Source: Piromyces finnis finn (lineage: Eukaryota; Fungi; Neocallimastigomycota). Taken from it: a stretch of DNA of 64,000 nucleotides. The first letter of the stretch is position 1. Every line of letters begins with the position of its first letter. Positions 3,001 through 24,019 of the stretch are shown here, piece by piece. Below the pieces are notes generated by a model that did not search any database, was not told where the DNA came from, and worked only from the letters and a program-made list of their open reading frames with translations. A program made the position numbers and the translations under genes. The stretch spans positions 1 to 64,000 of the forward strand of contig MCFH01000017.1 in NCBI GenBank assembly GCA_002104945.1. Direction: 5' to 3'.

Positions 3001-3080
3001 GTATAACCACTGTCAAATTACCAATTCAAGTTGAAAATTATTGTCTTTTCTTACCAATATTTCAGAAAAGACAATGCTCT
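78..3080 (+). pseudogene. Disrupted gene for a large Ser/Thr-rich, probably secreted protein (beta-pore-forming-toxin-like architecture, tentative)
   Basis: ORF pieces 508-723, 1035-1964, 1840-2145, 2181-2540 and 2476-2826, plus an unlisted frame from ~2825 to 3080, join into one protein through several frameshifts and in-frame stops (e.g. TGA 721, TGA ~2978). There is a decayed hydrophobic N-terminus after ATG 78. Two Ser/Thr-rich segments (SITTSKRISVTHSTGDVTSNSNSLT... and TRSVSNADVEGSSEGSSV...) flank LEKR, an amphipathic helix, a Gly stretch and an 11-aa repeat. Family assignment is by pattern only. Confidence 0.7.
2499..2733 (+). repeat. Coding 33-bp / 11-aa tandem repeat x7, consensus NYxQTExWNxx
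   Basis: After removing one extra G at ~2522 the translation reads TYNQTELWDQK NYDQMEHWNQM NYNQTETWNNL NYQQTETWNDK NYQQTEYWNAR NYEQTEKWNWK AFNQIEYWNER. Confidence 0.9.
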
Positions 3081-3084
3081 TTCG

Positions 3085-4100
3085 CTGTTACGTACAGCGA
3101 CCTTGAAAGAGGGTCGCTCTGTGATGATTTAGAAAAGATACGTAAGGCTGAAGATGGGGGGGTTTCCGATCCCCCTCAGAATTAAAAATTCAAAGTATCA
3201 ATTTTCTAAATTTCTAAAAATATATTTTATGAACTTAGTCCTTATATTTTTCCTTTAAAGACTAACCAAGTATACGGAATACTAAGAATGTTCCTTTGTC
3301 ATATCAGTACGACGTCGGCACTCTTAATTACGTTAGGTGTCTTACTAAACTGGCAATAGCAATGGAAGCAGAGTTCCATTTCAAAGGAAAGGATCCATTC
3401 CAGATTTTATTAAAAATTGATTTAAGACAATTTCCAGCAGACTTATGTTCTTTTTCCAGTTCTTTGTTACAAAAGAAAGCTTTGAAGAATTCAATTGGGA
3501 TACCATCGGGACCTGGACCCTTATTATTCTTCATTGACAGAACTATATTCCTAATTTCCTCAATAGAAATGGGATCATTAATATCCCATGTTATTTGATT
3601 GATATGATTAAATTGGAAGGCTCTTTCCCAGTAACCCCGATTTAAGCTATGATTTGTAGCATCAGATGCAAGATTTTCGTAATGTTCAGCCCAACGTTTT
3701 AATTGTTCTTGAGGAGTAAATAAATCCTTGCCATTCTTGTCCTTAAGAGTTGAAACATGAGAGGAGGAATAACTTGGTTTGGCAAGTTTTTTAAGGCCTT
3801 TCCAACCTTGTCTAAAGCTTTTATCAATAAAATGTTTACCGATAGAAACAATACTAGCTTTATAGAGATTGGATCTGAATTTACTCTTAACCTTTTTGAT
3901 AGTATTACATAAATTTTGGTATATGGAGAACTGGTTAAGATAATTATCCATTTCAGCACAATGAAGATTTGTTTATGTGTTCTGTCATAACTTTGTTGTA
4001 TATAATATGGTTATTATATGAGGATTTAGATCCTTTTTCCCAGTTAACTCAGCCATAGTCCAATCAGTCCGCTTTGTACATGATAATTAATGTATTTAAC
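3085..4100 (-). mobile_element. Non-LTR retrotransposon (LINE) fragment, 5'-truncated and internally deleted
   Basis: ORF 3328-3951 contains RWAEHYENL, ISIEEIRNIVLSMKNNKGPGPDGIPIEFFK and FPLKWNSASI, the linker and start of a LINE ORF2 RT domain. It breaks off before the YxDD core. The same frame continues upstream with stops to ~4100. A GC-rich hairpin-forming stretch at 3082-3180 is probably the 3' UTR. Confidence 0.88.
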
Positions 4101-4580
4101 ATAATGTAGTAAATTAACAAATATCATTTAAATACAATTTGTTTAAAAGTAAAAGTTTTAGAATTAGAAACAACACTGAATAAATACTATAAACTGGAGG
4201 ATTATATACAATAAAAATAATTTGCATTTTTTTTATCTTTTTTTGCTTCTTTTTTTTATTAATTTTTTTTTCTAGTTATTTAATTGAAACAAAAACAAAA
4301 TCTTTTTCTAATTAAAATGGTTTACAAGAAAAAAAAATATTATAATAAAATATATATTTTTTCTTTTTAACTATATTAAGAATTACATAATTTTATTTTA
4401 GTAAAGCTGATAAATAAATTACCATGCATTATGATAAATTATTACTTTACTTTATTTTATTACTTTTGTATATTATTAATTATTAATTATATTGGTGTTT
4501 AGTACTTCCTTTTATTAGAACTATTATTTAGATTATTTAAAAATTAAGATTTAAAATTATTTAATTATATTTAACAACTT

Positions 4581-7519
4581 TTAATTATTATTAACAACAT
4601 TATTGTTAAATAACATTTGTTGCATATTATTGTTTTTATTTTCATTGTAGTTGTTATTATTGTTGTTGCTATAATTATAAGAATTATTATTGTTACCATT
4701 GTTAGGAACAAGGTTATTATTAATAAAATGATAATTATTATCATTATTATTATAGTTATTTGGATAATAATAATTATTATTATTATCAACATTGTTATTA
4801 TTCATATTAATCATATTATTACTATTAAGTCCATTGTTATAATATCCATTATTATAAGTCATTGTTATATCATTTCCATTATTACTATCAGGAATAAATG
4901 AAAAATTATTATTTGGAACATTGTTGTATCCATATGAGCTAAAAGCAGGATTATTCATAGTTGGTGAAAAGGAATATGAAACATTCATTGCGCCCATAGA
5001 AGATCCGAATTGATCTTGTTCAGAATATGAAGGAGGAACATCGTCAATTTTGTTCTTTGATGCGGTATTTTCAAGGTCTGCCAAATGCTTATATGACGGA
5101 CGTTCTTTATTAGCAGTAACAAGTGGTACTGTATTATGTCCGATGCTAATAGCACTTCCATTTGATAATGAATTAGCATGGCCATCTGAAATATCAGGAA
5201 TATCGTTTTTACTACTATCATTGTTATATTCAAAATTATTGTTGCTGTTACCATTATTAACCTCAGGATTATTGTTGATACTACCATTAATAAATCCAGG
5301 ATTATTATTAATGCCATCGTTAATAAATTCAGGATTAGGATTATTGTTGATATTACCATTAATAAATCCAGGATTATTATTAATGCCATCGTTAATAAAT
5401 TCAGGATTAGGATTATTGTTGATATTACCATTAATAAATCCAGGATTATTATTAATGCCATCGTTAATAAATTCAGAATTATTATTAATGTTATCATTAT
5501 TATATCCAGCAGGATTATTATTGTTGATGTTATTATTAGTAATATTTTCAAGATTACTGTTAGAATCATTGTTATTATTATTATTAGTATTGATATTATT
5601 TTCAGGCATTGGGTTGGATGATGAAATAGAATTATTATCATTGACATTCAATACTGGTGGAACAAATCGTGTTTCTTTAGTATTATATTCATTATCTTCC
5701 TTTTGATTTTTACTTTTCCAGAGGAATAAAATACAAATAATAAGAAAAATAATAATACCACCTATAATATATAATAATAAATTTCCACCTTTAGAAGGAG
5801 ATGATTTTGGCTTTTCACATTTATTAGAATAAACTGATTCTGCATCTGGATAAAATTCGCGTGGATTCTCCTTTTTAATAAGTTTTTTACATGTGCCTGG
5901 TTCATAACAAATAACATTAATATTTCTTAAATCACATTGATTCACCTGTTTGCCAAAATTTCTTATTTCGATTGATAAGTCTGGATTCCCATCAAGATCG
6001 CTAAGTTAAAATTGAAAATAAAAATTTAATCATTTAAAAAATAAATATTTCAAATTTTTAAAATGTATTAAATATATAAATGATATAAGTATGTATAAGA
6101 TATGCAAATTAAGTTGAATTTATATTTATTATTATTTAAATAAAAAAACTTACAGCTCATTTAAATTTAATTTAAATATTTCATTAGATAAACTTTTTAA
6201 CTTTGTTTGACCGATATATCTTATTTATTACAATTTAATAATTAGAAAAAGAATATATTTAGATATATACATATATTATTACAATATTTCATCATATATT
6301 TTATATTTTTTTAATATTATCATTATATTAAATAATTTTATATAGAAATATTAATAAAGGTGATTATATCTTACAATATCTCGAGATTTTTTAATTTACT
6401 AATATCATCTGGAATAGAACTTAAATTATTTATACTCATATCCCTTTATATTTTAATAAAATAGTTTGAGATACAATGTTATTATTAAGATTAAAATTGC
6501 AAAATAGTATTATCTTTTTAGCTTTTATCATAAATATACTAACAAATAATTTAAATTAGAACATTTAGTAATTGAAGAAGGAAAACCGTTAAATTCATTT
6601 TTATATAAATCTCTATAAAATAAATTTTAAAATATAAATATTAATTGTTAATATTTTTGAATTTTTTAAAACATTGGTGCTTTTTAGATAAACTATTTTA
6701 ATAGTTAATATATTATTATTTAATGATTTTTTTAATTATAATAATAATAAAAAAAAGATTGATTTATTACAATAATTCTAATGAGCATGAAGATGGGATA
6801 TCATTTGGAATAGACTTAATATTTGAATTTATAGCATGTCTATTATCAAAATAAAAATTAATAAAAGAAAATATTATTATATAATAAATTAATAAAGAAA
6901 AGGAAATAAAAGCTTTTATGTTTGTATTAATAAATATTTACAATTCTTTTAATTTTGGCATTTTAAAAAAAACAGAAGGAAGGACACCATCTTTAAATAT
7001 TTTACCTTCTAAAATTCTTTTATATTAAATAAGAATATTAAATAAACAAAATGATAAAAGAAAAAAAAAAAGTTTATTAATAATAAATACTTTTAAATAC
7101 TTTTAATAAATTTAATAAGTTTTTTTGTTTTGTTTTGTTTCAATATATTACAATTTTTCAAGATAAGGTAATTCAGGGAAAGTGCTAAAGTCAATAATTT
7201 CTGGTGAACTATTCATTCTAATTTCTCTTAAATATGAAAATCAAAAAATAGTATTTTATTTTAAAGTATTAATACTATTTATATTCAAGTAAAATGTCTT
7301 AATAAATTTAAATATTTAATATAACCCTTACATTTCTGTAACATTATTATTGTCATCACAATAGACATGATTACCCCCTTTATCTTTTGAACATTCTAAT
7401 TTTTCTCCATATTTATTAAAGAAGTTTTTTACTTTAATACAGTCTTCTGAATCAAAAATTCCTAAACCAAAAATAGATATTATATTAAGAGAAAATAAAA
7501 CGATAGAAAAAAATTTCAT
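4581..7519 (-). CDS. LRR receptor-like single-pass membrane protein, copy 1 (~673 aa, 8 exons)
   Basis: Exons read by eye: 7519-7332 (signal peptide + Cys N-cap), 7217-7152, 7016-6942, 6839-6771, 6612-6544, 6443-6375, 6219-6154 (one LRR each, e.g. DMSINNLSSIPDDISKLKNLEIL) and 6000-4581 (last LRR, C-cap CDLRNINVICYEPGTC, TM LLLYIIGGIIIFLIICILFLW, Asn-rich tail with PPSY). All introns are GT-AG and the frame is preserved throughout. Confidence 0.88.
5269..5478 (-). repeat. 72-bp coding tandem repeat (~2.9 copies; 24 aa EFINDGINNNPGFINGNINNNPNP) in the cytoplasmic tail of LRR copy 1
   Basis: Units 5269-5340, 5341-5412 and 5413-5478 are near-identical. Confidence 0.92.
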
Positions 7520-7974
7520 TTTTTTTTTTTTAACTTGACTCTAAAATATTATATTATTTTCAATGGAGTATACATTAAATGTTTGAAAATTATTTATTTG
7601 TATGTAATATTTAATTCTTAAATTAATTATTAACAACTATGTGATACTATAATATATATATTTATTTTATTTTTATAAATATATATAAATTTTTATTTTT
7701 TATTTTTTATTTTTTTTTCAATTTGTTCTTTTATATATTTTTAAAATTGTTTTTCTTTTAAAAGTAAAATAAATTAGTTTTTTTAAATTAATAAAATAAC
7801 ATTTATTATTTACTTTTTTATATTTCTATGAATATTTTTCTATTTTTTATTTTTTCAATTGTTTTTTACTTTTTTTTTTTTGTAAGTTTTTAGAAAAAAG
7901 AAGTAAAACGTTTAACTTATATTATTCTATTTTCAATTTTTTGGACTTTACAATTCAGTTTGTCCGACATTAAC

Positions 7975-8185
7975 ATTTTTGATTAAAGGACTCTTTTTAA
8001 TATATATTAATTACATTTAATATTTATACTAATATATGATTAATTATATTTACATTTGTATATACATATATATATTGCGCCACAACATGACGACTAATAT
8101 TCAATTATTAATTATTATACTCTATAAATAATATAAATATATTTTGTGCTAACTATAATTAAATCTTTTTAACAATCTATATAAT
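7975..8185 (+). repeat. ~200-bp non-coding dispersed repeat, copy A (inverted relative to 14925-15135)
   Basis: gattaaaggactctttttaatatatattaattacatttaatatttatactaat...tgcgccacaa...ttttgtgctaactataattaaa matches the reverse complement of 14925-15135 with few differences. Confidence 0.85.
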
Positions 8186-9149
8186 TCGTATATTAAAATA
8201 TAATATATATTCATTTATTCATTATTAATGATGTTACATTTAGAATTTTAATACAATAAATAAATTAAACGTTAAGTGTAACATAAACTTTTAAAGTTTA
8301 TTTGTTATTAATTTGAAAAGTTTCATTCTAATCAAAATGTATCAAGTAAACTTTATTTATTATTATTTTATAAATTATTATTTATTAAACTATTGGTAAG
8401 AAGTTAAAATGTCCAGAAAATTAAAGAAGAATATCCAAGAAAATGGATTGAAAAGAATAATAATATTTCCTTAGTAAAATGACTATCACCTATCAATTTA
8501 GTATTATGTTAAAAAAAAAATGCTTGTATTTATTTTTCTCTTTGTTTATTTGTACATTGTCTATTAGTCTATTTATCTATTTGCATCTTCGTATTCTTGT
8601 CTATTTGTTTATTTGTCTTAATAGGCATTTAAGACCAGTTTAAATATGTTATTTACTGTGAATAATGAATATATAGAGTTTATAATGTGAAAATAATGAA
8701 AATTGAAACTTTTTTTCTTTTATTTTGTGATTTATTATGTAATAACATGAATTATTTCTTGTATTTCTTCTTTTAAATAGTACACAATTAATATTATTAA
8801 TAAAATGTAAAAAAATTAAAAAAAAAAAAAAAAGTAATTGTTAATCTTTAATGAACTAAATTGTTTATGTATAAAAAAGTTTTTTTCTAATTTTTTCATT
8901 GTTTAAATAATACGTAAAGGTATTATGGTTTAGCCTTTTTTTTTTTTAATTAGAATAATAATTTATTATATTTAAATGTTTGTTAAATTTCTGGTAAATA
9001 TATTTAAAAAGTCCTTCAAAGTAAACTATTTGTAAATATTATATATGTTTAATACTTCTTCCTTTTCTTTTTCTTTTAAAAGCTAAAAAAAACAATAACA
9101 AAAAATAAAAAATAATATTATTGAATCTTTATAAGTCAATATAAATAAA

Positions 9150-10760
9150 AACAATATTTTTTATTTAATAACTTTGCTATTAAGAATAGGCTTAAAAAAA
9201 AAAAAAAAAAGGAATTATTATCTTTTTATGTTTTAAAAATTTTTGGATTGAGTGCTTATCAAGAGCTTCAAAAGTTTCTTTATGGAAGTTATTATATAAG
9301 AGATACTATTAATTGTTATCATGAAAAAGAAATAAAATATGGGGATTTAGAAAAATTACAAAAATGTGTGCATTTATAAAATTGATATGATATAATTAAG
9401 TATTAAAGAGGAAAACTTTATGATTTTTCAGAATTTCTAAAGTTAACTGAACTTAATACATTGTGAATATCATATTTTGCTCCTTTTTTTGGTATAATAT
9501 AATAAAGATTTTTGTTATGAGTTAGTGCATTTAAAAATTATTAATATATATATGGTAAAATATTAAAATGAATATTAATATTTACATTATTTTTTTTTTT
9601 ATATAATTTAATAATTTTAGGAGCTTTTATCTTGGAGAAATGGAAAGCTTTCCAGAAGAAATTTTGAAAAGTTCAAATTTGAAGGCATTGTAAATAAAAG
9701 TATAAATATTATAAACTTTATATGATTGAAAAAAAAAGCATTAATATTAAACAAATTATATAGAGATCTTTCATATAATAAAGTAGGTGAAATGACAGAT
9801 AAAACTAATGATCTTAAAAATTTAGAAGAATTACAAGTTATACCTAAAATATTACAACAAAAAAATATTTCTTTATATCATTAAATAAAAATATTTTATT
9901 TCTAAAAGTATAATATAAAAATGCATTACTTTTTTTTTTTATTAAATTATTAACTGATAGTGAAATAAAAAGTTTACTAGAAAGTATTTACAATGTGAAC
10001 TTAAAATATACGTAAGTGAATATGTCCTATTTTTAATTTTAAAAGAACAACTTTATTAAAGACTATATTTTTATTTAATATTTTGGTAAATATTAGTCAT
10101 ATGAATAAAAATAGTAATTTGAAAATAGATTTCTACAAATTTAAAAATACGATTGATGGATGTACTTTTGATATTGATATTGATTGTTATCAATATGAAA
10201 AATGTTCAGCTATTTATACAGATCCTGAAAAAAAAAAAAGAAAAAGTAAAAATGAATAAGAACTTTAGAAATGCGTTATACCAGAAGATTCATCATTTTA
10301 TTATATTTTTAGTGGTGATATTGCTTTATTATTAATTATTTGCTTATTATTATTCCTTTTAAAAAGAAGTTTAAGGATGATGACTTAAATACCAGTAATA
10401 AGGAACAAAGATTTAGTTTAAATGATATGAACAATAAGAAAACTAAAGTTTATATTTATTCAGTAGATGATTCCAAAGAAACTGAGGAAGAGACAAGAAT
10501 TCCAGTTCTATTGATGTTAGCCAAAATGAAAACTTAAATCTCAATAATTTTCTACAGGACCTATATATAATGCAAATGAAATAGCAATCTCACCAATTGA
10601 AAATATAAATAATAATAATAACAACAACAACAACAGCAACAATAACGATTTCAATAACAATTTTGAAAATAATTATAATTCTCTATAAATATACACCTCC
10701 TAATTTTGTGAATACTTCTATAACTAACAATGATGCTGGATCTATACTTTTCAATTAATG
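9150..10760 (+). pseudogene. LRR receptor-like gene, copy 2 (pseudogene)
   Basis: LRR exons are recognisable (SFYLGEMESFPEEILKSSNLKAL ~9621-9689; DLSYNKVGEMTDKTNDLKNLEEL ~9763-9831), as are a C-cap (GCTFDIDIDCYQYEKC) and a TM remnant. No in-frame ATG precedes the signal-like segment, a donor is mutated (acaagtt for gtaagtt at ~9832), there is an in-frame TAA at ~10257 and there are frameshifts near the TM. Confidence 0.78.
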
Positions 10761-11676
10761 AAAATTTAAATAATAATAATAATAATAAATGATCCATCAT
10801 TAAAGTTAATAATATGTATTCTATTTGTATTTACAAACAAATTTATAACTATTATAAATTAATATTTAATGTAATATCCTTCTTTGTGATTTGAATGTCT
10901 ATTTTTTTTTTTTTGAATTGCCATGAGGAAAACTTAAAAACTGAAAGTAATATTTCAATATTTTAAAAACCTTTTTTTTACTTTGTATAAATCAATTATA
11001 ATTAAAATTTAAAGTATTAATTTTTTTTCAATAATTTAAAAGTTAACAGTAATATAATTATTATTGATATAGAAATGCATTATATATAAAAACTAAGAGT
11101 AATATATTCTCGTTATGTTATATATCAATAATTCTTTAATCAAAAAAGTTTCTCTCTTTTTTTTTTAGTACTGGCGTTGAGCATAGAAGTAAGATCTTCT
11201 TCAATACCTAGAATATATCTATCAATATTTAGCATTATTTGTGTAACATTCTATTTAAATTAAATAATGCAACAGTAAATAAATAAATTTTTTTTTTGTA
11301 AAAAATTTAAAATCTTTTGTTATTTAATTTATCAATGTAAAAAGAGATAAAAAGTAATAACAAAACAAAAAAAAAAATAAATAAAATAAAAACAAGCAAA
11401 AAACAAGCAAAAAAATAAGCAAAAACAAAAACAAAAACAAAATAAAGCAAAATATAACTAAAATAATACAATATTAAAATAAAAATAAAAAAAAAACGAT
11501 AAACAAATAATTTTTAAAATTGTAATAATTAGTAATAGCAATAATAATAAATATTAAATGAGTATTTACTTTTACTAAAACAACAATAAAAGTGATACTT
11601 AACAAAAATATTGATATAAATTTAAAAAAATATTCAAGTAAATAAAAGTTTTTTTCTTTTTTTAAAAAAAAAAAAA

Positions 11677-14538
11677 ATGTCAGTATATATAAATCAGGAT
11701 TGTGCATTAGTTACCGATTTCTTTGATAATTACATGATAAGTAACAATAGGGAATTAAACCCTAAAGTTCCAGAATGCTGTAAATCCTCAGATAAAAGTC
11801 ATTATATTAATTGTAATAATGAAAATATTACAGAAATGTAAGTTTATATTAAATATTTAAATTCGTTAAGACGGTACATTCGAATATTAATAATTTTTTT
11901 TTATTTATTTTCATATTTAAGGACATTAAGATGGTCAAAATCCATAGAAAATATTGACTTTAGCACTTTTCCAGAATTACCTTATCTTGAAAAATTGTAA
12001 TATATATTGCCACTGAAAAAAAAAAACTAATTAAATTTATTACAAGTATTTAAAAGTATAATTATTAATAAACTTTTTTTTTTCTTTTATCATATTGTTT
12101 ATTTAACTTTCTTATTTAATACAAAAGAATTTTAGAAGGTGAAATATTTAAAGATGGTGTCCTTCCTTCTGTCTTCTTTAAAATGCCAAGATTAAAAGAA
12201 TTGTAAGTATCTTTTCAATTAAATATTTATTAATAAAAATATAAAAGTTATTTCTCCCCCATTTCTTTATTAATTTATTATTTAATATTATTTTCTTTTA
12301 TTAATTTTTAATTTGATAAATAGCCATGTTGTAAATTCAAATATTAAATCTATTCCAAGTGATATCCCATCTACCTGCCCTTTAGAATTATTGTAATGTA
12401 TCAATCTTTTTCTTTTGTTGCTGTTGTAATTACTAAAAATCATTAAACTATTGTTAAATAATATGTTTATTAAAAAAATATTGTTTTATAAAATTTAAAG
12501 ATATTAACGAAATTTGAATATTTATATTCATATTTTAAATTTTATTTTATAGAGATTTATACAATAACAAATTTAACGGATTTGCTACTTCAATTACTAA
12601 TTGTTCCAATTTAAAATATTTGTTAGTATATTTAAAATAATGATTAAAAAGATAATATTTCATAAATACAATTCTAATAATAACATTATATCTTAAATTA
12701 TTTTATTAAAATATGAAGGGATTTGAGTGTTAATAGTGTAGGTTCTATTCCAGATGATATTGGTAAATTAGAAAATCTTGAGACATTGTAAGTTAAAAAC
12801 ATTTCTATTAAGATTTTCATCAAAAAATAGAATAAACCATTTACAATAGTATATGAGTATAAAGAAATATCAATTAATATTTCTCTATTTACTAAATTGT
12901 AATATTTAAGGTATATCGGTTCCACCCAATTAACAAGTTTATCTAATGAAGTATTTAAATTTAATTTGAAAGAGTTGTAAGCTTTTATTTTAATTGGAAT
13001 AAATTTAACATAATTTATTTTTTATATATTTTATGATTAATATTTTATATTTCCAATTTATTTCTTAATTTAGTGATCTTTCTGGAAATCCAAACTTATC
13101 AATTAAATTAAATAATTTTGGAAAAAAAATTGAAACTTGTGATTTAAGGGATACAAAAATTACTTGTTATGAACCAGGTACTTGTGAAAGTATTATTAAA
13201 GTACCTGCTGAAAAAGAAGGAGAACCATCAATATATTATTCAGAATCCGAATTAAGTTTTCTAAAAAAATGTGAAAAGTCATCTTCCAACCCTAAAGAAG
13301 GGGAGGGTGGTAATTCATTATTATTTATCATAGGCGGTATTATTATTTTACTTATTATTATTATTTGTATTTTATTTTTCTGTAAAAAGAAAAATCAAAA
13401 GGATAATGATAATGATAATAATAATGATGATGGCGAATATAAGACCAAAGACACCCAATTTATCCCACCACTAATGAAAGATAAGGATAATAATTCTATT
13501 TCATCAGCTTATCCAATGCCGGAAGATGATAGCAATACTAATGATAATAAAATTAATAGTACTAACAATACTGTTATTGTGGGTAGTGTAGATAATATTG
13601 ATTCTAATAGTAATCTTAAAGAAATTGCTAATGACAACAACAATGATAATAAAGAAATAATTGATCCTGATTCTTCTCCTATTACGGATAATATTATTAA
13701 TGACAATACTGACGCTGTTAACATTGATAATAATGTTATTATTTCTGATAATAATAATAATGCTAATACTGATAATGATATTAATAACAATAATCCTAAT
13801 TCTGAACTTAATAGTACCATTAATACGACAACAGCACCTATTATTAATAATTCAGAAAATTCTATTGATCATAGTAATATAAACACTATTAATAATAGCC
13901 ATAATATTGTTCCACTTGTTTCTTCTAATAGGGAAGAACGTCCATCAAATAAGCGTTTAGAAGTTATTGAAAATACCGCATCAAAGAATGAGATTGAAGA
14001 TGCTCCACCATCATACACTGAACAAGATCAATCATTTTCATTTAATCCAATTCAATATTCTCTTTCACCAACCATGAATAATGCTGTTTTATGCTCTTAT
14101 GGATACAATAATGTTTCAAACAATCGTTTATCTTATATTTCCAATGATAATATGGGAATGAATATGAATATGAATATGAATATGAATATATTAAATAATC
14201 CTTTAGTTGGTAATAATATTGTTTATTCGGGAAATGGGGTTAATTTTACACCTATGAATTATACTAATTATGTTAATGGTGGATTTGATAATAATATTTA
14301 TATGAACAATAATTATATTAATACAAGTGTAAATAATAATTATGCTAATAACTATAATTTTATTAATAATAGCTTTATGAGTGGTAATTTTGATTATAAT
14401 ATGAATTCTGGTAGTAGTAGTAATAATAATATTAATAATAATATTAATAATAATAATAATAATAATAATAGTAATAGTAATTATTGCAACGCTATTATCA
14501 CTAGCAATAACAATAATAACAATAATCAAAATGAATAA
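11677..14538 (+). CDS. LRR receptor-like single-pass membrane protein, copy 3 (closest paralog of copy 1)
   Basis: N-cap exon (DCALVTDFF...PECC...INC..ENITEI), six LRR exons (~11921, 12128, 12323, 12552, 12719, 12911) and a terminal exon from ~13074 with CDLRDTKITCYEPGTC, TM SLLFIIGGIIILLIIIICILFF and an Asn-rich tail with PPSY. The true start and signal peptide are uncertain: ATG 11677 gives no signal peptide and sits beside a long A run. Confidence 0.84.
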
Positions 14539-14924
14539 GAAGATTGTTAAAAATCTTTATAATAGATTATATTAACAGTAATTTAATTTAATGTACTTTT
14601 TAATAAAAAAAAATTGTAAAAACAAAAGAAATTTTGAAATAAACAAAGCAAAACAAAAATCATATTATTAAACATAGAATTAGCCATAAAAAATGACAAC
14701 AATTAATAATTTAGAAATAATGTAATATTTTATTATCATAGATTTAACATTCATTATTATTAAATTAATAAGCGTTATATTTAAAAAAGTGTAGATATAT
14801 AAATCATTCTTTGGAGTATTCCCATATATAATAAATATAATTTTGCTTAGCTTATTAGAGTATCTTTTTTTTTCTTCTTCTCATTCAGATTCGATCTATT
14901 GAAGAGTTGTAAAAATTTATTTGA

Positions 14925-15135
14925 TTGAATTGCATTATGTTAAAAAAAGTTTAATTATAGTTAGCACAAAATATATTTATATAGAGTATAATAATTAATA
15001 ATTATATATTAGTTAATATATTGTGGCGCAGTATATATGAATATACAAATGTAAATGTTAATTAATCATGTATTAGTATAAATATTAAATGTAATTAATA
15101 TATATTAAAAAGAGTCCTTTAATCAATAATGAAAT
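14925..15135 (-). repeat. ~200-bp non-coding dispersed repeat, copy B (inverted relative to 7975-8185)
   Basis: Reverse complement of 7975-8185: tttaattatagttagcacaaaa...ttgtggcgca...atatatattaaaaagagtcctttaatc. Confidence 0.85.
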
Positions 15136-15530
15136 TAACACAGATCAACTTAAAAAAAAATTTTTTCTTTTGCATTAAAGTTTTTAATATAACTTTAATT
15201 ATTAATAAAATTTATTATTATTAATTACTTTTTTTTTTTCTGTATTTTTAAATTTGTAGCTTATATTTTTTATTCTTCACTAAAACTTTTGATGGTTCAT
15301 TATATATTATTAATGTGCTTTTAAAAATTATACTAATTAATTATTATGTACTTTTAATAATGCATTATTTAATTTTTCTTTTAATATATTTTCTTTATTC
15401 ATAAAATTAATAAATAAAAGAATCTTCTATATATTTAAAAGAAAAGAAATGTAGAACATTTTTAAAACTAATTTTTTTAATATTTTTTTTTACTATATAA
15501 TACTATAGTTAGTGCTAATATTAATTATTA

Positions 15531-15547
15531 TTATTGAATAATATTAA

Positions 15548-15638
<91 letters not shown>

Positions 15639-17734
15639 ATTGTTGTTGTTATAGCCATTACTATCAACAAAACTATTGTTATAATTATTATTAAAAGAAA
15701 TATTATTGTTGAATCCATTATATCCATTACTATTGAATCCATTATTGAATCCATTATTATTGAATCCAGTATTATATATAAATCCATTATTATTCATATT
15801 ATTCATAAGTCCAGTATTATTCATAAATCCAGTATTATTCATAAATCCAGTATTATTCATAAATCCAGTATTATTATAATTATTGGCTATAAATCCATTG
15901 GTATTTACAAAATTAAAACTATTATTACCAAAATTGTTGTTGTTATAATTGACGTTGTCTCCATTATTATAAACGGAAACAGAATTATCATTGAAACTAC
16001 CATTATTAACTTCAACGTTTTCATCATTATTATTTGAATACTTTATAGTTGGTTCAGCAACACCATAGGATATAGTTGGAACAGCTTTAATAGAATTTTC
16101 AGTTCCTTTTCTTTGTATAGAAATTGATTCTGCATCATCATCATCACTCTTTCTAAATCTCTTGAAACAACAACAACCAATAATACATAAAACAACAATA
16201 ACTGCAAATCCTCCAATAATAATATAGATTATTTTACTAGATCCATTAGATTTTTCTCTAGTTTTAGTACATTTCTTAAAGTCAGATTCCTTTAATTCCT
16301 TAATAGGATTTTTTGATTCAGGATTATCAATAATTCTTTTACATGTACCTGGTTCATAACAACCAATAGTTAAATCAAAACTACATTCATCGACTACTGA
16401 TGGAAATTTATTGATTTCTATTTTTAAATCTTTATTGTCATTAATATACCTTAAAAATACCAATTTATCAAATAATATATAAATTATGATATTATACTTA
16501 ATAAATTACATTCCAAAATGTTCCTTATAATAATAATAATAATAATAATAATATAAACTTACAGTTTTTCAATATTTAAATCAAAAATCTTGTCTGATAT
16601 TGAAGTTAATTTACTATCAATTAATGATCTAAAAAAATGTATTTTTTTATAAATGAATAAATTTAAAAAAAAAAGATTTATAACAATTTTTTTTAAAATA
16701 ATAATATTTATCTTACAATTCTTTTAAGTTTTTTAATTCACTTATATCATCTGGAATTGTACCAATATTGTTAAATGAGAGATTTCTATTAATAAAAATT
16801 TATTTCATTTGTTAGTATAGGATACTAATAAATAATTAAAATACACTACATAGCCATACTTACAAAATTTCTAAATTTTTACAATTTGTAACTTCTTTTG
16901 GAAAACTTTTAAGAGAACCAATAAAAAAACTCCTATTAAATTTGATTATAAGCAATCATATATGATGTATTTACATAGTATTTTTAGTATTATATAATAA
17001 ATAGGATTAATGATTAAATACTAAATAAACAAAACAAATCGATTTCTTTATTACAATAATTTAAGAGAGTTTGATTTTGGAATATTATTAACGGAAACTA
17101 TATTAGATTTCATAATATGTCTATATTTTACAAAAAAATAATAGTTATAATAATAACATTTGAAATGTTTTTAAATAAATAGAATTAAATATATATATAT
17201 AAGGTAATGTTATTTTATATCTATATTATAAATTTACAATTGTTCTAGTTTTGGTAATTCAAGTAGTTTTGAAGGAAAAGCGTCATTTTTATATATTGGT
17301 CCTTCTAAAGCGCTTAAATATATATAAAAAAATAATATTATAATAATTATTCATAATAAAGAATAATCATATTATATATTACATATAGTTAAGATTTGGT
17401 AACATTGGAAAAGAGGAAAAGTCAATATTTAATTTTTCTTTAGTTCTCCAAGTTCTTTTTATTGAAATATATATATATATATTAATAAGTAATGAAAAAA
17501 GTGAAATTATTAAAATAAAGAAAAATTATATTAATTTCATATTTATACTTACAATTCAGTTACTCGGCCATTTTCACATTTAATACTATCACTACAACAT
17601 GCTGGGAAATTTGCTTGGTCTAGATTATTCATTTTTGAAAATTGATTAAGTTTATTGCAATCTTCTGTTTCTAAACCTAAACTATATACTGAAGCTACAG
17701 TACATAAAGACAATAATGATTTCCAGAATTTCAT
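15531..17734 (-). CDS. LRR receptor-like single-pass membrane protein, copy 4 (8 exons)
   Basis: Signal peptide MKFWKSLLSLCTVASVYS, N-cap DC..ACC..IKC, six LRR exons (e.g. NLSFNNIGTIPDDISELKNLKEL ~16785-16717) and a terminal exon from ~16450 with CSFDLTIGCYEPGTC, TM IIYIIIGGFAVIVVLCIIGCCCF, NTGFMN repeats and a poly-Asn tail. Confidence 0.88.
15545..15655 (-). repeat. Coding (AAC)n(AAT)n microsatellite encoding poly-Asn at the C-terminus of LRR copy 4
   Basis: The plus strand shows (att)n followed by (gtt)n. Confidence 0.92.
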
Positions 17735-18670
17735 TTTATTTTTTTTTTCCTTAAATTAAAGTTTATTATATATTTATTTTTTTTAGTTATGGTTTATAAT
17801 TATTATTTATAATTATAATCCTTAATTATTTATTCTATATTTTTATGTTTAGCTTTTTTTTTTTTTGTTCTTTAATTTTTTATATATAGGATTTTATATT
17901 TATTTTTTATTTATTTATTTATTTATTTTATAAACTAAATATATATAAATAAATATAAATGAATATATTAATATGTATCATTTTTCTTAAAAGAAAATTA
18001 ATTTAAATTAAATTAATTATTGGTCAAAATTTTTAATAATTATTTAACTTTTTTTATGTATAAAAATTAATAAAACTTTAAACTTTATTTAATAATAATT
18101 TTTATTAATATAAAAAATCTAATTTATATATTGGACTATTACATTTCAATATATATTAGATATTAGGTAATCATCTCATATACCAATGCAATACATTTAT
18201 ACAAACAAGATAAATAATGTATTTATTTGTTACAACGAAATATTATTATTTTGATATTTTATTAGAAAATAAAAATAAAGAATAGGCTCTCTAATCAAAA
18301 TAAAAATAACTTTAAATATACATTAATCAAACTTTGAGTAAAAAAAAAAAAAAAAGAAAAAGCTTTAAAAAAGTTAACTAAAACTATGCTACCTCTGTAA
18401 CATAATAATAACTTTTATTTCTTATTGAATTTACTAAATTGACATTTCAATTTTTATTATAGAAATAAAAATGTATAATTTTTTTTAATCTACTCTTCTG
18501 TTTTGTTCATTAACTGATTTACTTTTTATTTATTTACTTATTTTAACGATTTATTCTTACATTTCTTAATTTATGTTTGCATTGTTATAATATATTAACT
18601 ATGTATTCATAAGCTTTATTTCATTAATGTTTTATAACATTTTTTTTTATTAATTTATTTTATTTATAAT

Positions 18671-21269
18671 CTAATTATTTTTTTCATTATCCTTATTTTC
18701 ATTATTATTATTATTATTATTATCTATATTATTATTATTACTATTGTTATTGTTGCTGTTATTATTTATTAAATTATTATTGTTGAAATCATTTATATTA
18801 ACATTAAGGTTATTCAATGGTAATGAATTATTATAAGACATTAATACAGAATTTGGATAATTACCGCCATTATTATTCATAATGAGGCTGTTATTCATAA
18901 TGAGACTGTTATTCATAAGAGCATTATTTATAAGATTATTATTGTTCATAGGATTATTATTCATGAGGGCATTGTTCATAAGAGCATTGTTCATAAGGGC
19001 ATTATTCATAATGGCATTGTTCATGAGGGCATTATTTGAATTAACAGCATCACCCATGTTATAATTATTTAAATAATATCCATTATTAACTAATGATGAA
19101 TTAACACCACCATACATTGGGAAAACAAAATTGCCATAAGAATTTATTGGTAATGATTGAATAGATTCAAATTGTGCGTTGCTTTTAAAAGGTGTTTCTT
19201 GGTTATCAGAATGATAGGATAAACGACTTTGATCTAGACCATAGCCCATATTTGAATTATGACTAAGAGTTGAATGTTGCATTGTTGGAGAGGTTTGGTA
19301 AATCATGCTACTATTATTTGCATTAGTATCTGTAATTGAATATGGTGGTAATTCGGAATTTGCTTGATCTGCATTGTCTTTACTTTGACTTCTAAGAATT
19401 TCCAACTCTTTAGTCGTAAGTTTTTGCTTTTGTTCAGCAATTTGATTCAATTGAGCATTTACATCGTTATTTTCAACTGTATCATTATGAATTTCTTTTT
19501 GCTTTCCAGAAGGAATAGTTAGTATAGGAGCAACTGGACTAATTGGACTAACACCGAAACTTGTATCCGAATTTGGTTCAATATGAGAATCAAGGTTAAT
19601 GCCAAGAGTAGATGAATTTGGTGAACTACATGAAATATCAACTGAGGATGGAACAGGTGAGCCGGGATTAATATCACTCACCATAGACATTGATCCAACT
19701 GGTGGCATTATCGGTGATATTGATGGGGAATTTAATTCACAATTAGATAATTGGGTCTCAATATTTTGAGTTTGTGTTTCAGTATTTTGAGTTTGGGATT
19801 CTTGAATTGGTAAAGCCATTCCTTTATCTGGAGATATTGGGGTTTTAATGTTAATTTCAGAAATTTGATTTGGTAATATATTTTCACTGTCATCCACTTC
19901 CTCAATCGTAATTATTGGTAAGTTTCTATTTTGTTCTTGTGCTGGAGGTTTTGATAAAACCATAAAGTTTTTTTCAGTTTCACTCTTTTTGCCCTTCTTT
20001 TTTCTACATAATAAACAAATCAAGCATAAAAGTATAACAAGAACAACACCAAGACTTATAATAATAATTAAATTAAGAGTGCTCATCCCCATTACACCAG
20101 CTTTACATTCATCATATTTATCCATATATTCACTTTCAGCTACAATCTTACGTGGATCCTCTTCAATAATAAAATTTTTACAAGATCCTTTTTTGTAACA
20201 TGAAATTTTTGTATTCATTAAATTACAGGTTTCAACAGGATTTTTAAAACGAATTTCAGTACTTATTTCGAGATTCCCATCAAGATCACTAAATAGAGGG
20301 GGGTTAATAAATTAAGAAATTTTAATATAAAAATATGATCATATTAATAGGCATTATAATTGATTCAAACTTACAAATCGGTTAATTTTTCTAAATTAAA
20401 TATTTCTGATGATAGTGATTTCAATCCAGTCATTCCAATATACCTGTAATTACAAATAAATATAAAATTAGAAATTTTTTCGAATATTCAGCATAAACTT
20501 ACAAAATAGTTAAATTTTTTGTGAAAACTTACAAAATTTCCAAATTTTTTAAGTTACTAATTTCATCTGGTATAGTCCTAATATGTTGGTTTCTTGAGAT
20601 ATTACTATATATTTCATTGTTTTTTATACATTAATGATATTAATTATTCACCTTATATTATTTCCTAATTATATAATATATACAGATAATAAAAACAATA
20701 ATTTATATAAATATAAAATAAAAGCAATGATGCAAAAACAACATGATATGTTATTTTTTCTTCATTGATTTATCTGATAATTTAACTTACAGTTTTGTTA
20801 ATTGTGTACATTTCAAAAAAGGACTTGGGAAACCTTCAATAAAGTTGTTATATACATCTCTATATAATAAAAAAAAAAAATTGCATATTTTTTAATAAAA
20901 ATTTAAAAAAATAATCGTTTTTATATTAAAAGTGATAAATTAATATCTATTGTTAATAACGTATTCAATAAACAAATAAATTCAGTGCTTACAAAATTTT
21001 AATGTTACAAGGAAAATCAAAATCCGGAACAGTTTTAATATTAGAATTTAAAATTTGACTTTTATTTTTTTAATAATAATATAAAAAAAGGAAGATAATT
21101 AGTACACTATGAAATTACATGTTATAAATAAACATTTTACTTACAGAGTTTCTAATTTTGGATATTTTAAAAATGAAGTTGGGAAAGAATCATCTTTTAG
21201 AACTGAACCGTCTAAATAGCTTTTTAATTAATTTGAAAACAACAACTTTAATATTTGCTTTATAATAAA

Positions 21270-21318
<49 letters not shown>

Positions 21319-21914
21319 TTTTATTTTATTTATCCAGTAAAACAATATATGAATTTAAATATTTACAATAATTTAAGATTTTCCAAAGGTGGAAAAGAAG
21401 AAAAATCTATTTTTTTTCCTTGAAATCTACTATATCTCAATTTTCTATTAAAAAGATATAAAAAGGAAGGAATATATTAATATTTATACTTAATAAATCA
21501 TAATTACTTAAGAATTGGGATTTATAAATTATCCTAGATTTTTTTGCCTAGAAATTCTGGCTTTTTTGATTTTTGTCTGGTTAAAAATTTACCAGAGGTC
21601 AAATTTCTTCTAGCCAGAATCTTTGGCTAAATCCTTAGAAAATCTAAGATAAGTTATAAATCATAGAACAAAACACCATTATATTCTATTAACAAAAATA
21701 TAAAGTATACATACATAGCAGTAATAGAATTATTTTCACAAGCAATATATGGACCATGTTCTTTATATACACAACATTCTGGAACTTCTAAAGTTACTCC
21801 AGAATCAAGCATATAATTATTGAAAAAATTTTGAACTTGTTCACAGTCATTGTTTATCAAACAAAAAACTGATAAAAAATTAAGAATAAATATAAATAAT
21901 GAATAATAATTCAT
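18671..21914 (-). CDS. LRR receptor-like single-pass membrane protein, copy 5 (8 exons)
   Basis: Signal peptide MNYYSLFIFILNFLSVFC, N-cap DC..PECC..IAC, six LRR exons (e.g. DVYNNFIEGFPSPFLKCTQLTKL; NISRNQHIRTIPDEISNLKNLEIL) and a terminal exon from ~20288 with CNLMNTKISCYKKGSC, TM LIIIISLGVVLVILLCLICLLC, a Pro/Ser-rich then Asn-rich tail with LPPY and NNALM repeats. Confidence 0.88.
21519..21662. mobile_element. MITE-like foldback element in intron 1 of LRR copy 5
   Basis: 24-bp terminal inverted repeats (GATTTATAAATTATCCTAGATTTT versus revcomp GATTTATAACTTATCTTAGATTTT, 22/24), with further internal inverted matches (attctggct/agccagaat; tctggt/accaga). No clear TSD. Confidence 0.65.
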
Positions 21915-24019
21915 TTGTAATTACAAAACTAGTTAATTTACAAAAAAGGATAAGATTTTTTTTTTTTTTCAAATATTAAATTTTAATATTTGTTAATTAA
22001 ATTAGTATTTTTTTTTTTCAATTTATTTATTTCTTATAGTATAGTAAATATATTATTATTGTTATTATTATTAATTACTATTTCTTTATGAAAAATATTA
22101 TTTCATAAAAATAATTAATAATAATTTTAATTTAGAAATTGGTTGATAGATGTTGGATATATATTTACTATTTATTTATTTTATTATTTATTATTTTTTG
22201 TTTTTTAATATTTAATTTTTATATTTAAAAAAAAAAAAGAAAAAAGAAATTTCAATGAAAAATACATTTCTTTGTGAAGCTTGTGTAACATTATCCATTA
22301 CTTTTTATAACCAATGAAATGGACAAAATAGGAAACTACAAATTCAAGGATATCCACAATTAAAGAACAATTTTTGAACGAGATAAACTTTAAAATAGTT
22401 GACAGTTTTTGAAAGAATAAATAAAAACAAAGGAATAACAAAGGAACGATATAAAAAAAAACCAAAGATCTATATTATTCAATATTTCTTGAAAAAAAAA
22501 TAAAGTTTCTTATAAATATGTGATATGTAATCATTAAAAAAGAAATAAAGTTTTTATAATTCATCTGATAACGATAATGCTTATTAGTTAAATAGGCCTA
22601 ATATAATAATATACGTGTTCAATTAATAATAAATTTTATAATATTATCTTACGTACTTTTGTATAGTATTATTGTGATAATCCATGATATTATACCTAAT
22701 TTTTCACATTATATTATCTAATGATAATTGCATAATAAAAATAAATCAATATAGAATGTTTTGAAAAAATATATACCATATATTTATGTATTAAGATGCA
22801 TGATTTACTACTTTCGACATAATTTATATATTTATATTTAGGTTTTTATTATTTTATATAATATATAATATATAGGATTATGAAACTAAAAATGAAGCTT
22901 TTTTTTTTTTTTTTTTAATATAACCATATCAGAGTTAATTAAAAAAAAAAAAAAAAGAAAAAAAAGAATAATATTAAAGTTAACTTCATATAACCATTGT
23001 AATGAAGAGATTTAAATAAAAAATGCATAATGACATAAAGTTTATTTTAAAGATTAAATATTTAATATTTTATTATTAGTAGTAGTTGCTGTAGTAGTAG
23101 TAGTGGTTTTGCTTACAAAGGAATGAAATTTTATCTTTATTAATAATTCTAATAGGTTAGTTTTAATATTATGACCTTATAAATAATAATACAATGATAC
23201 CTTTTTATTATAATATAAAAAAAAATCACAATTCTTTTTTAACTTTTTTTTAAGTACAATATTTTATTTTTATAAAAAAAAAAAGTTAACATTTACGTGG
23301 ATGGTAGATTCCGTATTTTAGTTAAAAATTTTATTATTTACTAATAAAAAAAAAAAAAGGTTAGTCTAGTATGAGCACATTTTATATTCTATTCTTATTT
23401 TAATATAAAAATATGAAATAAAATAGTAATAATATGACTTAAAGAAGAACCCACTTTTTATAAATTACTTTATAATAATTTGAAATCTAACCTTTTAAGT
23501 AATTAATTTGGTAATTAAATATATTTAAATAAAAACAATAATTATAAAAGTATTATATCATATATTTAAAAAACTACTTTTGATATATATACAAGATTTA
23601 CTTTTTTTTTTTTTTTTTTACTTTTCAATTTATTTTCTTACTCAGAGAATATGAGTTAACAAGGTATAATGTAAATCCACTATTTCTCCATGATATTCAA
23701 TATGAAAAAAAAAAAAAAAAAAAAAGAAAAAAATTAACTTATTCTTTCAACACCCCCCAATATATTATTATTATTATTATTTTAGACTTTGATAGTTTTG
23801 TTTATTACTATTTTAATTGAATTAAAATAACTCTTTTATTAAAATACATAAAAATTAAAAATAAAACATAAATAAATAGAGTGAGTAAAGAGGATGAAAG
23901 AACCTTTAACTCTTTCCATTCCTCGATAATAATTTTTCTTTTTGTGGATTATTATAATTATTATTCAATTCTGTATCAGAATTTCTTCTTTGCTTTTTTT
24001 TTTTTTTATTTATTTATTG

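Follow-up and report, generated by a model that had tools for sequence, protein, structure and literature searches.

We examined the first 64 kb (64,000 nucleotides, hereafter the window) of Piromyces finnis scaffold MCFH01000017.1. Five paralogous copies of an LRR gene lie at 4581-21914, at the start of the scaffold, and tblastn against the whole window detected none elsewhere. Our in-frame models resolved them into four intact eight-exon genes (G1, G3, G4, and G5) and one pseudogene (copy 2), in mixed orientation (Table 1). The cluster is confirmed as proposed in the initial annotation, with the corrections given below. All four intact genes have seven phase 2, GT-AG introns at the same positions. 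Their products share a plan in which a Cys N-cap is followed by LRRs, a four-Cys C-cap, one transmembrane (TM) helix, and an N-rich tail of 210-450 aa. The single TM segment recognized earlier was borne out as one helix after the C-cap, followed by basic residues. Public annotation already covers the cluster genes, as hypothetical or "L domain-like" proteins. The initial annotation knew of no characterization of this LRR-TM family, and we found no description or characterization of it in the literature searched.

Table 1 Features of the LRR-TM gene cluster (window positions; minus-strand exons in transcript order)
Feature	Position	Strand	Basis
G1, intact 8-exon gene, 676 aa	4581..7519	minus	own in-frame model
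G1 exons	7519-7332, 7226-7152, 7016-6942, 6839-6771, 6612-6544, 6443-6375, 6219-6154, 6000-4581	minus	
G1 C-cap core, C-x8-C-Y-E-P-G-T-C	5889..5936	minus	
G1 transmembrane helix, K-rich stop-transfer residues after	5718..5780	minus	
G1 PPSY (PY) motif, cytosolic tail	5025..5036	minus	
Copy 2, pseudogene, closest relative G4	9149..10800 (approx.)	plus	
Copy 2 remnants	LRR5 9622-9690, LRR6 9765-9842, LRR7, last exon 10071-10349	plus	
G3, intact reading frame, 682 aa	11677..14538	plus	own in-frame model
G3 exons	11677-11837, 11922-11996, 12128-12202, 12324-12392, 12553-12621, 12719-12787, 12911-12976, 13074-14538	plus	
G3 PPSY motif	14005-14016	plus	
G4, intact 8-exon gene, 505 aa	15531..17734	minus	own in-frame model
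G4 exons	17734-17553, 17454-17383, 17312-17238, 17120-17055, 16932-16864, 16785-16717, 16628-16563, 16449-15531	minus	
G5, intact 8-exon gene, 748 aa	18671..21914	minus	own in-frame model
G5 exons	21914-21715, 21444-21367, 21219-21145, 21058-20993, 20859-20791, 20604-20533, 20443-20375, 20288-18671	minus	
G5 LPPY motif	19340-19351	minus	

The cluster genes are transcribed and spliced. In four RNA runs, 0.38-0.46 of the words from 11400-17399 were present. The share fell to 0.17-0.18 over the stretch of G3 that consists only of small exons and introns, where the presence of all six exons and the absence of every intron would give 0.20. The possibility that the genes are untranscribed, raised in the initial annotation, is not borne out: exon words occur in the RNA runs and intron words are absent. 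For the window's own genes, splicing rests on these word shares, on the in-frame GT-AG models, and on agreement with the public model of G3 (P0003), which is identical to ours over residues 1-373. Relatives are represented by full-length ORFs that run without interruption, and without introns, through six AT-rich, metatranscriptome-like contigs.

The copies differ in how much of the plan they retain. G1 encodes a signal peptide, a three-Cys N-cap, LRRs, the C-cap, the TM helix, and an N-rich tail bearing PPSY; in public model P0001 (BCR36DRAFT_411712), the N-terminal part of this protein is missing. G4 has a signal peptide and a four-Cys N-cap, and its tail contains a poly-N run but no PY motif. 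Only G5 combines all family hallmarks (signal peptide, four-Cys N-cap, and LPPY). Signal peptides had been assigned to all copies except the third, which was left unresolved. They were found in G1, G4, and G5, but G3 has none, and a scan of 900 bases upstream revealed no candidate exon for one. G3 might not reach the surface because it lacks a signal peptide. Copy 2 has no start codon, N-cap cysteines, or LRR1-4. Its last exon contains two in-frame stops between C-cap cysteines 3 and 4, before the TM region, and frameshifts later. Public annotation places a 109-aa product there, at 9640-10688.

Each ectodomain contains six full LRRs, each encoded by one exon, and a half repeat within each cap, so that the earlier estimate of about seven LRRs was fair. 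At 66-78 nt, and mostly 69, the LRR exons encode a 23-residue repeat with the consensus IPxxIxxLxNL. This repeat type is SHOC2/Leptospira-like; the 24-residue plant repeat LxxLxLxxNxL[ST]GxIPxxLGxLxx was not encountered. Pfam LRR_8 was present in all 34 full-length relatives, and P0003 (G3) matched LRR_8, LRR_4, and LRR_1 above Pfam cut-offs. Across the same 34 relatives, the four cysteines of the N-cap and the four of the C-cap are invariant. The N-cap pattern C..CC..C and the Cys-rich C-cap described initially thus hold for the family, but in G1 the N-cap reads C..C..C, with one Cys of the invariant doublet gone. The C-cap motif, C-x(8-9)-C-Y-x-x-G-x-C ... C, immediately precedes the TM helix.

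In the AlphaFold2 model of the G3 ectodomain (pLDDT 90.5, pTM 0.89), an LRR solenoid lies between an N-cap that is helical and a C-cap that is rich in beta structure. The solenoid is about 250 residues long and is predicted to be disulfide-capped. Foldseek matched this model exclusively to LRR proteins, the best being generic ones (Leptospira LIC, SHOC2); internalin A, LRRTM2, and the Nogo receptor were also among the matches. Sequence matches of the LRRs in the PDB were LIC11098, LRRD1, SHOC2, GSO1, and FLS2. Queried with the G3 ectodomain, a word-indexed protein search yielded generic plant, bacterial, and archaeal LRR proteins with no special affinity and no transcript-derived copy of G3. 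The ESM Atlas contained only generic LRR clusters, all scoring below 0.9.

Compared with 14 plant N-caps, the N-cap gave an hhalign probability of 93.8% (E = 1.7e-7, 28 columns), and its sub-threshold PDB matches fell exactly on plant N-caps. The C-cap profile matched nothing in the PDB, and in the word-indexed protein search the G1 C-cap matched only the gene's own public model. Pfam LRRNT, LRRNT_2 (PF08263), and LRRCT had zero matches among 34 family ectodomains.

The initial annotation had read the family as RLP-like and had drawn a parallel with plant RLP/RLK and animal TLR immunity. This does not hold for the repeats, which are of neither the plant RLP nor the TLR type and match LIC and SHOC2 best. 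SHOC2, LRRD1, and the LIC proteins are the closest in repeat sequence and fold and share the 23-residue repeat. However, they are cytosolic or bacterial and lack Cys caps, a TM helix, and a PY tail, and they resemble the family in the repeats alone. Among kinase-less animal LRR-TM proteins, LRRTM2, the Nogo receptor, LGR ectodomains, and RP105-like proteins are comparable in size, in being of type I or anchored to the membrane, and in their disulfide caps, and such proteins were among the fold matches. In sequence the likeness does not go past generic LRR affinity, and their LRRNT/LRRCT caps have no match in the family. Toll-like receptors differ in the same caps (absent from the 34 ectodomains) and in their TIR domain, which is missing from the G1, G3, and G5 tails.

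To delimit the family we used a profile of the C-cap and TM helix. It gave 117 matches, 110 of them with the Cys motif, corresponding to at least 110 protein clusters. All named members come from Piromyces, Pecoramyces, Neocallimastix, and Anaeromyces, which all belong to the Neocallimastigomycota; many are truncated public gene models. The matches support the view of the initial annotation that this is a lineage-specific, multi-copy family. Matches to Diversispora, a fish Ig protein, an oomycete kinase, Dscam, and one repetitive ENA protein were rejected because they covered only TM or low-complexity sequence without the Cys motif. A bacterial origin of the C-cap module was rejected, as it had no match among 185,579 bacterial and archaeal genomes. 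With at least 110 sequence clusters detected solely in Neocallimastigomycota, the family represents a large repertoire of LRR surface proteins in gut fungi. Soanes and Talbot reported in 2010 that "receptors" combining LRRs with a single TM helix are almost absent from fungi (PMC2939053). The proteins described here have both features that defined an LRR receptor in that survey, a Pfam LRR match and a single transmembrane helix. To our knowledge, the survey is older than the sequencing of any Neocallimastigomycota genome.

The long, low-complexity tail had been described as disordered and free of kinase and TIR domains. Neither these nor any other Pfam domain was detected in the last exons and tails of G1, G3, and G5, but a PY motif had been overlooked. 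Of 82 family tails, 50 contain [PL]PxY; the expectation from shuffles was 3.7 +/- 2.0 (maximum 11), and just two of the 82 ectodomains have the motif. This enrichment is a new finding of the present analysis. The cluster motifs are PPSY in G1 and G3 and LPPY in G5. The extended consensus is acidic-x-[PL]PxY-[ST]-E, often no more than about 10 residues from the C-terminus. G4 and about 40% of the family have PY-less tails, although some public tail models are doubtful. In the N-rich tails, the public models differ from ours in removing blocks of repeats as introns. The tail block around the motif is conserved among G1, G3, G5, and relatives in Piromyces sp. E2. PY motifs are established WW-domain ligands and known docking sites for Nedd4/Rsp5 ligases (PMC9282857). 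The motif suggests that the tails dock an Rsp5/NEDD4-type ligase and that the proteins are under endocytic control, and it offers a concrete first handle on function.

On balance, we consider the locus to be probably a tandem cluster of Neocallimastigomycota-specific type I membrane proteins, with the solenoid outside the cell and a PY tail that docks a ubiquitin ligase. Signal peptides, N-glycosylation sites, and paired cysteines, together with the basic residues that follow the TM helix, suggest that the solenoid is external. It would bind an extracellular partner, which may be a protein, a peptide, or a surface, either of a plant or of another microbe. In the tail, the PY motif would engage WW domains in a HECT ubiquitin ligase of the Rsp5/NEDD4 type. 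Surface level or signaling output would then be set by ubiquitin-dependent endocytosis rather than by a kinase or TIR domain.

Such a motif, strongly enriched and often close to the C-terminus, also invites comparison with membrane-anchored Rsp5 adaptors such as yeast Bsd2, Ear1, Ssh4, and Rcr1 or animal NDFIP, in which a cytosolic [PL]PxY likewise lies beside a membrane anchor, as it does in Commissureless. Acting as adaptors, the cluster proteins would recruit the ligase through the PY motif and deliver it to other membrane proteins, with cargo selected by the LRRs on the luminal or outer side. The TM region of G5 has a weak match to RCR (PF12273, E = 0.32), but this is far below the Pfam threshold. 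No homology to any of these proteins was detected, and none has an LRR ectodomain. More than 100 diverged paralog clusters would also be unusual for a sorting adaptor, and we regard this role as quite unlikely.

Variability on the putative binding face of the solenoid does not exceed that on its back (entropy 1.88 for the concave and 2.00 for the convex face, p = 0.55). Positive selection found no support, as the dN/dS of 0.47 between G1 and G3 does not exceed 1 and concave-face entropy is not above convex. Because the binding face shows no excess variability, receptor, adhesin, and immune roles can each be entertained.

The initial annotation favored RLP-like pattern-recognition or non-self receptors for rumen bacteria, methanogens, or plant ligands; such receptors would signal through partners. 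Plant RLPs (Cf-9, EIX2, RLP23) do share the signal peptide, the Cys-capped extracellular LRRs, the single TM helix, and the lack of a kinase. Their paralogs are also clustered, with one LRR per exon, and the family N-cap resembles theirs in the C...CC...C pattern and a C-D-x-x-G-x-[VI]-T-x-L strand, in keeping with the hhalign result. The architecture fits the Soanes and Talbot definition. The family has many members, is clustered and lineage-specific, and includes a pseudogene, and its copy number may differ in Piromyces sp. E2. When a Pecoramyces species was co-cultured with a methanogen, the ten most strongly down-regulated genes included an LRR receptor-like gene (PMC6414434), possibly of this family. 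However, the repeats have 23 residues (IP-x-x-I-x-x-L-x-N-L), not the plant 24 with L-[ST]-G-x-I-P. There are only about seven of them, without an island domain, the C-cap is unrelated, and LRRNT_2 does not match. The tail, short in plants, is long here and carries the PY motif. No kinase, TIR, or death domain was detected, no SOBIR1/BAK1-type partner or other co-receptor is known for the gut-fungal family, and neither the entropy nor the dN/dS value favors such a role. We find this reading unlikely. It is likewise improbable, in our estimation, that gut fungi have a surface recognition system of their own, in which over 100 diverged LRR-TM receptors, each with an N-cap like that of plants, sense rumen bacteria, methanogens, or plant surfaces and have as their output a PY-recruited Rsp5/NEDD4 ligase instead of a kinase or TIR domain. 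If true, it would be a third independent LRR surface-sensing solution and a counter-example to the idea that fungi are without LRR pattern-recognition receptors.

A role in adhesion is a lesser but real possibility. The LRR ectodomain would give zoospores or rhizoids a hold on plant particles, on partner microbes such as methanogens, or on one another, and the tail would control turnover only, with no signal transduced. The short ectodomain, the lack of a catalytic or known signaling domain, and the unexceptional variability of the concave face are consistent with this. Adhesion-type LRR proteins are among the fold matches (internalin A, LRRTM2, Nogo receptor), but such matches are generic to all LRR proteins. 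The conserved tail block suggests more than a passive anchor. Should the proteins sense or bind rumen partners, they would be relevant to the way in which gut fungi locate plant material and syntrophic methanogens.

The cluster probably evolved by tandem or inverted duplication, gene conversion, and decay, as judged from a tree, the identity between G1 and G3, and the partial match in gene order with Piromyces sp. E2. G1 and G3 are 80-95% identical from intron 1 onward and 48% in exon 1, which are signs of a recent inverted duplication or gene conversion. Losses would have accumulated along the cluster: copy 2 is dead, G3 is without a signal peptide, G1 is short of an invariant cap cysteine, and G4 has no PY motif. 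Together with the G1/G3 dN/dS, these losses could mean that the cluster is mostly decaying and consists of expressed, non-functional remnants, with the working members of the family elsewhere. We consider this very unlikely. The four long eight-exon reading frames are intact with canonical splice sites throughout, and a dN/dS that lies well under 1 points to continuing constraint. G5 retains each hallmark, and its ortholog in Piromyces sp. E2 (P0004, OUM62816.1) is also intact and lies in a gene order that matches only loosely or in part. The birth-and-death evolution proposed initially has its signs here, in the pseudogene, the G1/G3 duplication or conversion, and a copy number that may differ between the P. 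finnis cluster and Piromyces sp. E2, which has one more match to the last exon, upstream of its G5 ortholog.

In a six-frame reading of 4400-22100, LRR-like exon fragments form five sets. A long exon comes after each set and encodes a cysteine motif, a hydrophobic helix, and an N-rich tail, in that order. Enumeration of GT...AG pairs gave in-frame 8-exon models for four of the five sets (G1, G3, G4, and G5), listed below in window coordinates, which are also those of Piromyces finnis scaffold MCFH01000017.1 (GCA_002104945.1), whose first 64 kb form the window. All 28 introns of these genes start with GT, end with AG, and are in phase 2; they are 70-270 nt long and lie at equal positions, and exons 2-7 (66-78 nt) encode one LRR apiece. 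A tblastn search with the four ectodomains found no copy in the window beyond the five loci. The cluster first proposed, with four intact genes and one pseudogene, is confirmed with small corrections. The window DNA has 15-33% G+C, and such low values are expected in an anaerobic gut fungus.

Features of the LRR-TM gene cluster and its neighbors
Feature	Position	Strand	Description
G1	4581-7519	minus	676 aa, 8-exon model
PY motif, G1 tail	5025-5036	minus	PPSY
Copy 2	~9149-10800	plus	dead; remnants of LRR5, LRR6, and LRR7, and last exon
G3	11677-14538	plus	682 aa, 8-exon model
PY motif, G3 tail	14005-14016	plus	PPSY
G4	15531-17734	minus	505 aa, 8-exon model
TM helix, G4	16164-16232		CCC at cytosolic end
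G5	18671-21914	minus	748 aa, 8-exon model
PY motif, G5 tail	19340-19351	minus	LPPY
TM helix, G5	20006-20071		C-x-x-C-x-x-C at cytosolic end
Tetraspanin-family ORF	32903-34498	minus	ordinary neighbor gene
LIM-domain ORF	43047-43664	plus	ordinary neighbor gene
SAP18 ORF	45140-45997	plus	ordinary neighbor gene

The public models differ from ours. That of G3 (P0003, 'L domain-like protein') agrees exactly over residues 1-373 and runs beyond the stop at 14536-14538, to 15065. That of G1 (P0001, BCR36DRAFT_411712) begins at an internal Met of exon 3 and so lacks the signal peptide and N-cap. Both remove parts of the N-rich tail as putative introns, whereas our models keep them (4581-5700; 13500-14538); the block removed from G1 contains three tandem 24-aa repeats. 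Copy 2, where the public annotation has a 109-aa product, lacks a start codon, the N-cap cysteines, and LRR1-4. Its last exon is nearest to that of G4 (E = 2e-14), with two in-frame stops between C-cap cysteines 3 and 4 and with the TM and tail in shifted frames.

We compared the cluster with RNA data along three indirect lines. Four RNA runs from the same organism contained 0.38-0.46 of the sampled words of 11400-17399 (G3 and most of G4), where full splicing of G3 and G4 would give ~0.49 and G3 alone at most ~0.30. Within 11845-13070 lie G3 exons 2-7 with their introns and nothing else, and 243 of the 1,196 31-mers of this interval are wholly exonic (expected share 0.20). The runs contained 0.17-0.18 of the interval's words, so the small LRR exons are present in RNA and the introns absent. 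In addition, six metagenome contigs (1.5-3.0 kb, 20-26% G+C) have a single uninterrupted ORF apiece, 499-813 aa long, that encodes a signal peptide, N-cap, LRRs, C-cap, TM, and tail. Because the genomic copies have seven introns and these ORFs none, the contigs are spliced transcripts of relatives, and in these the LRR and TM exons are joined. Neither of two outcomes that would have refuted the initial annotation, untranscribed genes or splicing that leaves the LRR exons apart from the TM exon, was observed.

A profile (A1) that covers the C-cap and TM of the four window genes, scored on 1.84 billion representative proteins, yielded 117 matches at E <= 0.001, with the C-cap cysteine motif in 110. 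Six of the seven motif-less matches were non-fungal or repetitive proteins, matched only via the TM region or low-complexity sequence, and were rejected. The named true members are all from Neocallimastigomycota: Piromyces finnis (including P0033, on another scaffold), Piromyces sp. E2, Pecoramyces ruminantium, Neocallimastix californiae/lanati, and Anaeromyces robustus. The remaining members are N-rich proteins of metagenomes and run assemblies. The plan is complete in many matches, which have a signal peptide, an N-cap, and a TM helix at residues 230-380; many others consist of gene models cut down to the last exon. At E <= 0.001, A1 matched no chytrid, zygomycete, or Dikarya protein in this set, and scanning 185,579 bacterial and archaeal genomes for the pattern gave no match. 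The family appears to be restricted to Neocallimastigomycota, in line with the lineage specificity claimed in the initial annotation and at odds with a single-copy housekeeping protein conserved across fungi.

Soanes and Talbot define an LRR-receptor by an LRR domain together with a single TM helix, and G1, G3, G4, and G5 qualify; their survey, which did not include Neocallimastigomycota, found LRR-receptors in only 4 of 49 fungi, with five genes in total (PMC2939053). A 2026 paper reported expanded LRR-RLK orthogroups in a chytrid MAG and cited small LRR-RLK numbers in chytrids and zygomycetes (PMC13618815). In a Pecoramyces-methanogen co-culture, an 'LRR receptor-like' gene was among the ten most down-regulated (PMC6414434). 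A study of the membrane proteome of gut fungi makes no mention of LRR proteins and classes many single-pass proteins as unknown (PMC5168858). Our literature search found no description of a Neocallimastigomycota C-cap/TM LRR family. The main new points are the apparent restriction to this phylum, a PY motif found family-wide, a plant-like N-cap, and a family-specific C-cap.

Among 34 full-length relatives, the four cysteines of the N-cap (C...CC...C) and the four of the C-cap are invariant or almost invariant. The four-cysteine N-cap holds for the family and fails in G1, which has ECS where the others have ECC and has lost one cysteine. The proposed signal peptide is typical in G1, G4, and G5 and missing from G3. 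The G3 N-terminus (MSVYINQDC) lacks a hydrophobic stretch, no alignment was obtained between the 5' regions of G3 and G1, and a scan of the 900 nt upstream found no ATG-hydrophobic-donor exon in compatible phase. G5 alone within the cluster retains every family hallmark. Otherwise the architecture described in the initial annotation holds. The repeats are of the 23-residue IP-x-x-I-x-x-L-x-N-L type, and each ectodomain has 1-3 N-x-S/T sites. LRR3 and LRR4 (exons 4 and 5) of G1, G3, and G5 carry two cysteines exactly one repeat apart, which would fit an inter-repeat disulfide.

Pfam detected LRR_8 in 34/34 relatives and LRR_14 and LRR_4 in 33/34 each; LRRNT, LRRNT_2, LRRCT, kinase, and TIR domains were absent from the ectodomains and from the G1, G3, and G5 tails. 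The AlphaFold2 model of the G3 ectodomain, with the 34-sequence alignment as input (pLDDT 90.5, pTM 0.89), starts with a helix and hairpin, continues through six regular LRR strands, and has a C-cap rich in beta structure. Foldseek searches of PDB and Swiss-Prot models matched LRR proteins only (TM-scores by query 0.35-0.57). Leptospira LIC12234, LIC10831, and LIC11098 and SHOC2 ranked first, followed by internalin A, LGR4, LRRTM2, the Nogo receptor, and some plant LRR-RLKs; a PDB sequence search agreed. Since the fold and sequence matches are all generic LRR proteins, there is no privileged likeness to plant RLPs or TLRs, and the likeness first proposed is unsupported beyond the general plan. 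Profile-profile comparison of 33 family N-caps with 14 plant RLP/RLK N-caps gave a probability of 93.8% (E = 1.7e-7) over 28 columns, spanning CC...[IV]-x-C-[DN]-x-x-G-x-[IV]-T-x-L. The N-cap profile also had three sub-threshold plant PDB matches, at or near receptor-kinase N-terminal caps. These results are suggestive of a cap type in common with plant RLP/RLK, which does not prove common descent. The C-cap profile had no match in PDB and therefore appears family-specific.

Phylogenetic analysis of 37 ectodomains placed the four window genes in one 13-member clade (support 100/100), which also takes in sequences from Piromyces sp. E2, Pecoramyces, another scaffold of P. finnis, and transcript contigs. 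G1 is sister to G3 (100/97) and G5 to P0004 of Piromyces sp. E2 (OUM62816.1; 100/100), and G4 clusters with two transcript-derived proteins; ectodomain identity between copies is 37-62%. The Piromyces sp. E2 contig (KZ150918.1) has the same order for part of the cluster, with the G5 ortholog followed by a G4-like last-exon match and a G1-like first exon. Upstream of the G5 ortholog, at 5472-7250, it carries a family last-exon match (annotated as a 547-aa product) with no window counterpart, so the two Piromyces genomes may not have equal copy numbers.

G1 and G3 are arranged head to head. Their first exons (7332-7519 and 11677-11837) and upstream DNA are unrelated (48% identity), in contrast to 67-95% identity from intron 1 to exon 8 (80% in the introns, nearly as high as the 85% in exons 2-7). 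This pattern points to recent inverted duplication or gene conversion, with the putative breakpoint at the end of exon 1. Together with the dead copy 2, it bears out the view of a clustered, expanding and decaying family. Focused diversification is typical of immune receptors. Exons 2-7 of G1 and G3 have a dN/dS of 0.47 (dN 0.14, dS 0.30), and in the 13-member clade mean entropy was 1.88 at concave-face x positions versus 2.00 at convex x positions (one-sided p = 0.55). There is no sign of focused diversification in this crude entropy test, and the immune function put forward in the initial annotation is unsupported.

K/R-rich residues follow the TM helix. Under the positive-inside rule a basic flank marks the cytosolic side, which places the tail in the cytosol. 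No Pfam domain was detected in the tails of G1, G3, and G5, consistent with the reported lack of kinase and TIR, but the tails are not devoid of features. A tail block ending in [DE]-[AV]-PPSY-[ST]-E is common to G1, G3, and their Piromyces sp. E2 relatives, and G5 and its ortholog carry LPPY; the G4 tail has no [PL]PxY. Across the 82 family tails of at least 60 aa (from P0004-P0116), this PY motif occurs in 50, compared with 3.7 +/- 2.0 (maximum 11) in 300 composition-preserving shuffles, and only 2/82 of the same proteins have it in the ectodomain. The tail motifs have acidic flanks, and in half of the positive tails the last one is no more than 11 residues from the C-terminus. The motif is present on both main branches of the family tree and is therefore probably ancestral. 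It is established that WW domains of Nedd4/Rsp5 HECT ligases bind PY motifs (PMC9282857). From the motif, we infer that the tails could dock a Nedd4/Rsp5-type ligase, and ubiquitin-dependent endocytosis may control these LRR-TM proteins or be their output.

A glycine is conserved in the TM helices (as part of a GG pair in G1, G3, and G4), and those of G4 and G5 have cysteine clusters at the cytosolic end; these are possible helix-packing and palmitoylation sites. A G+C-richer island (0.33 versus ~0.2 nearby) was observed at 2001-4000. Its 207-aa ORF (3328-3951, minus strand) has no Pfam match at E <= 0.001, and the island lies between the LRR cluster and a 452-aa annotated gene at 1035-2540.
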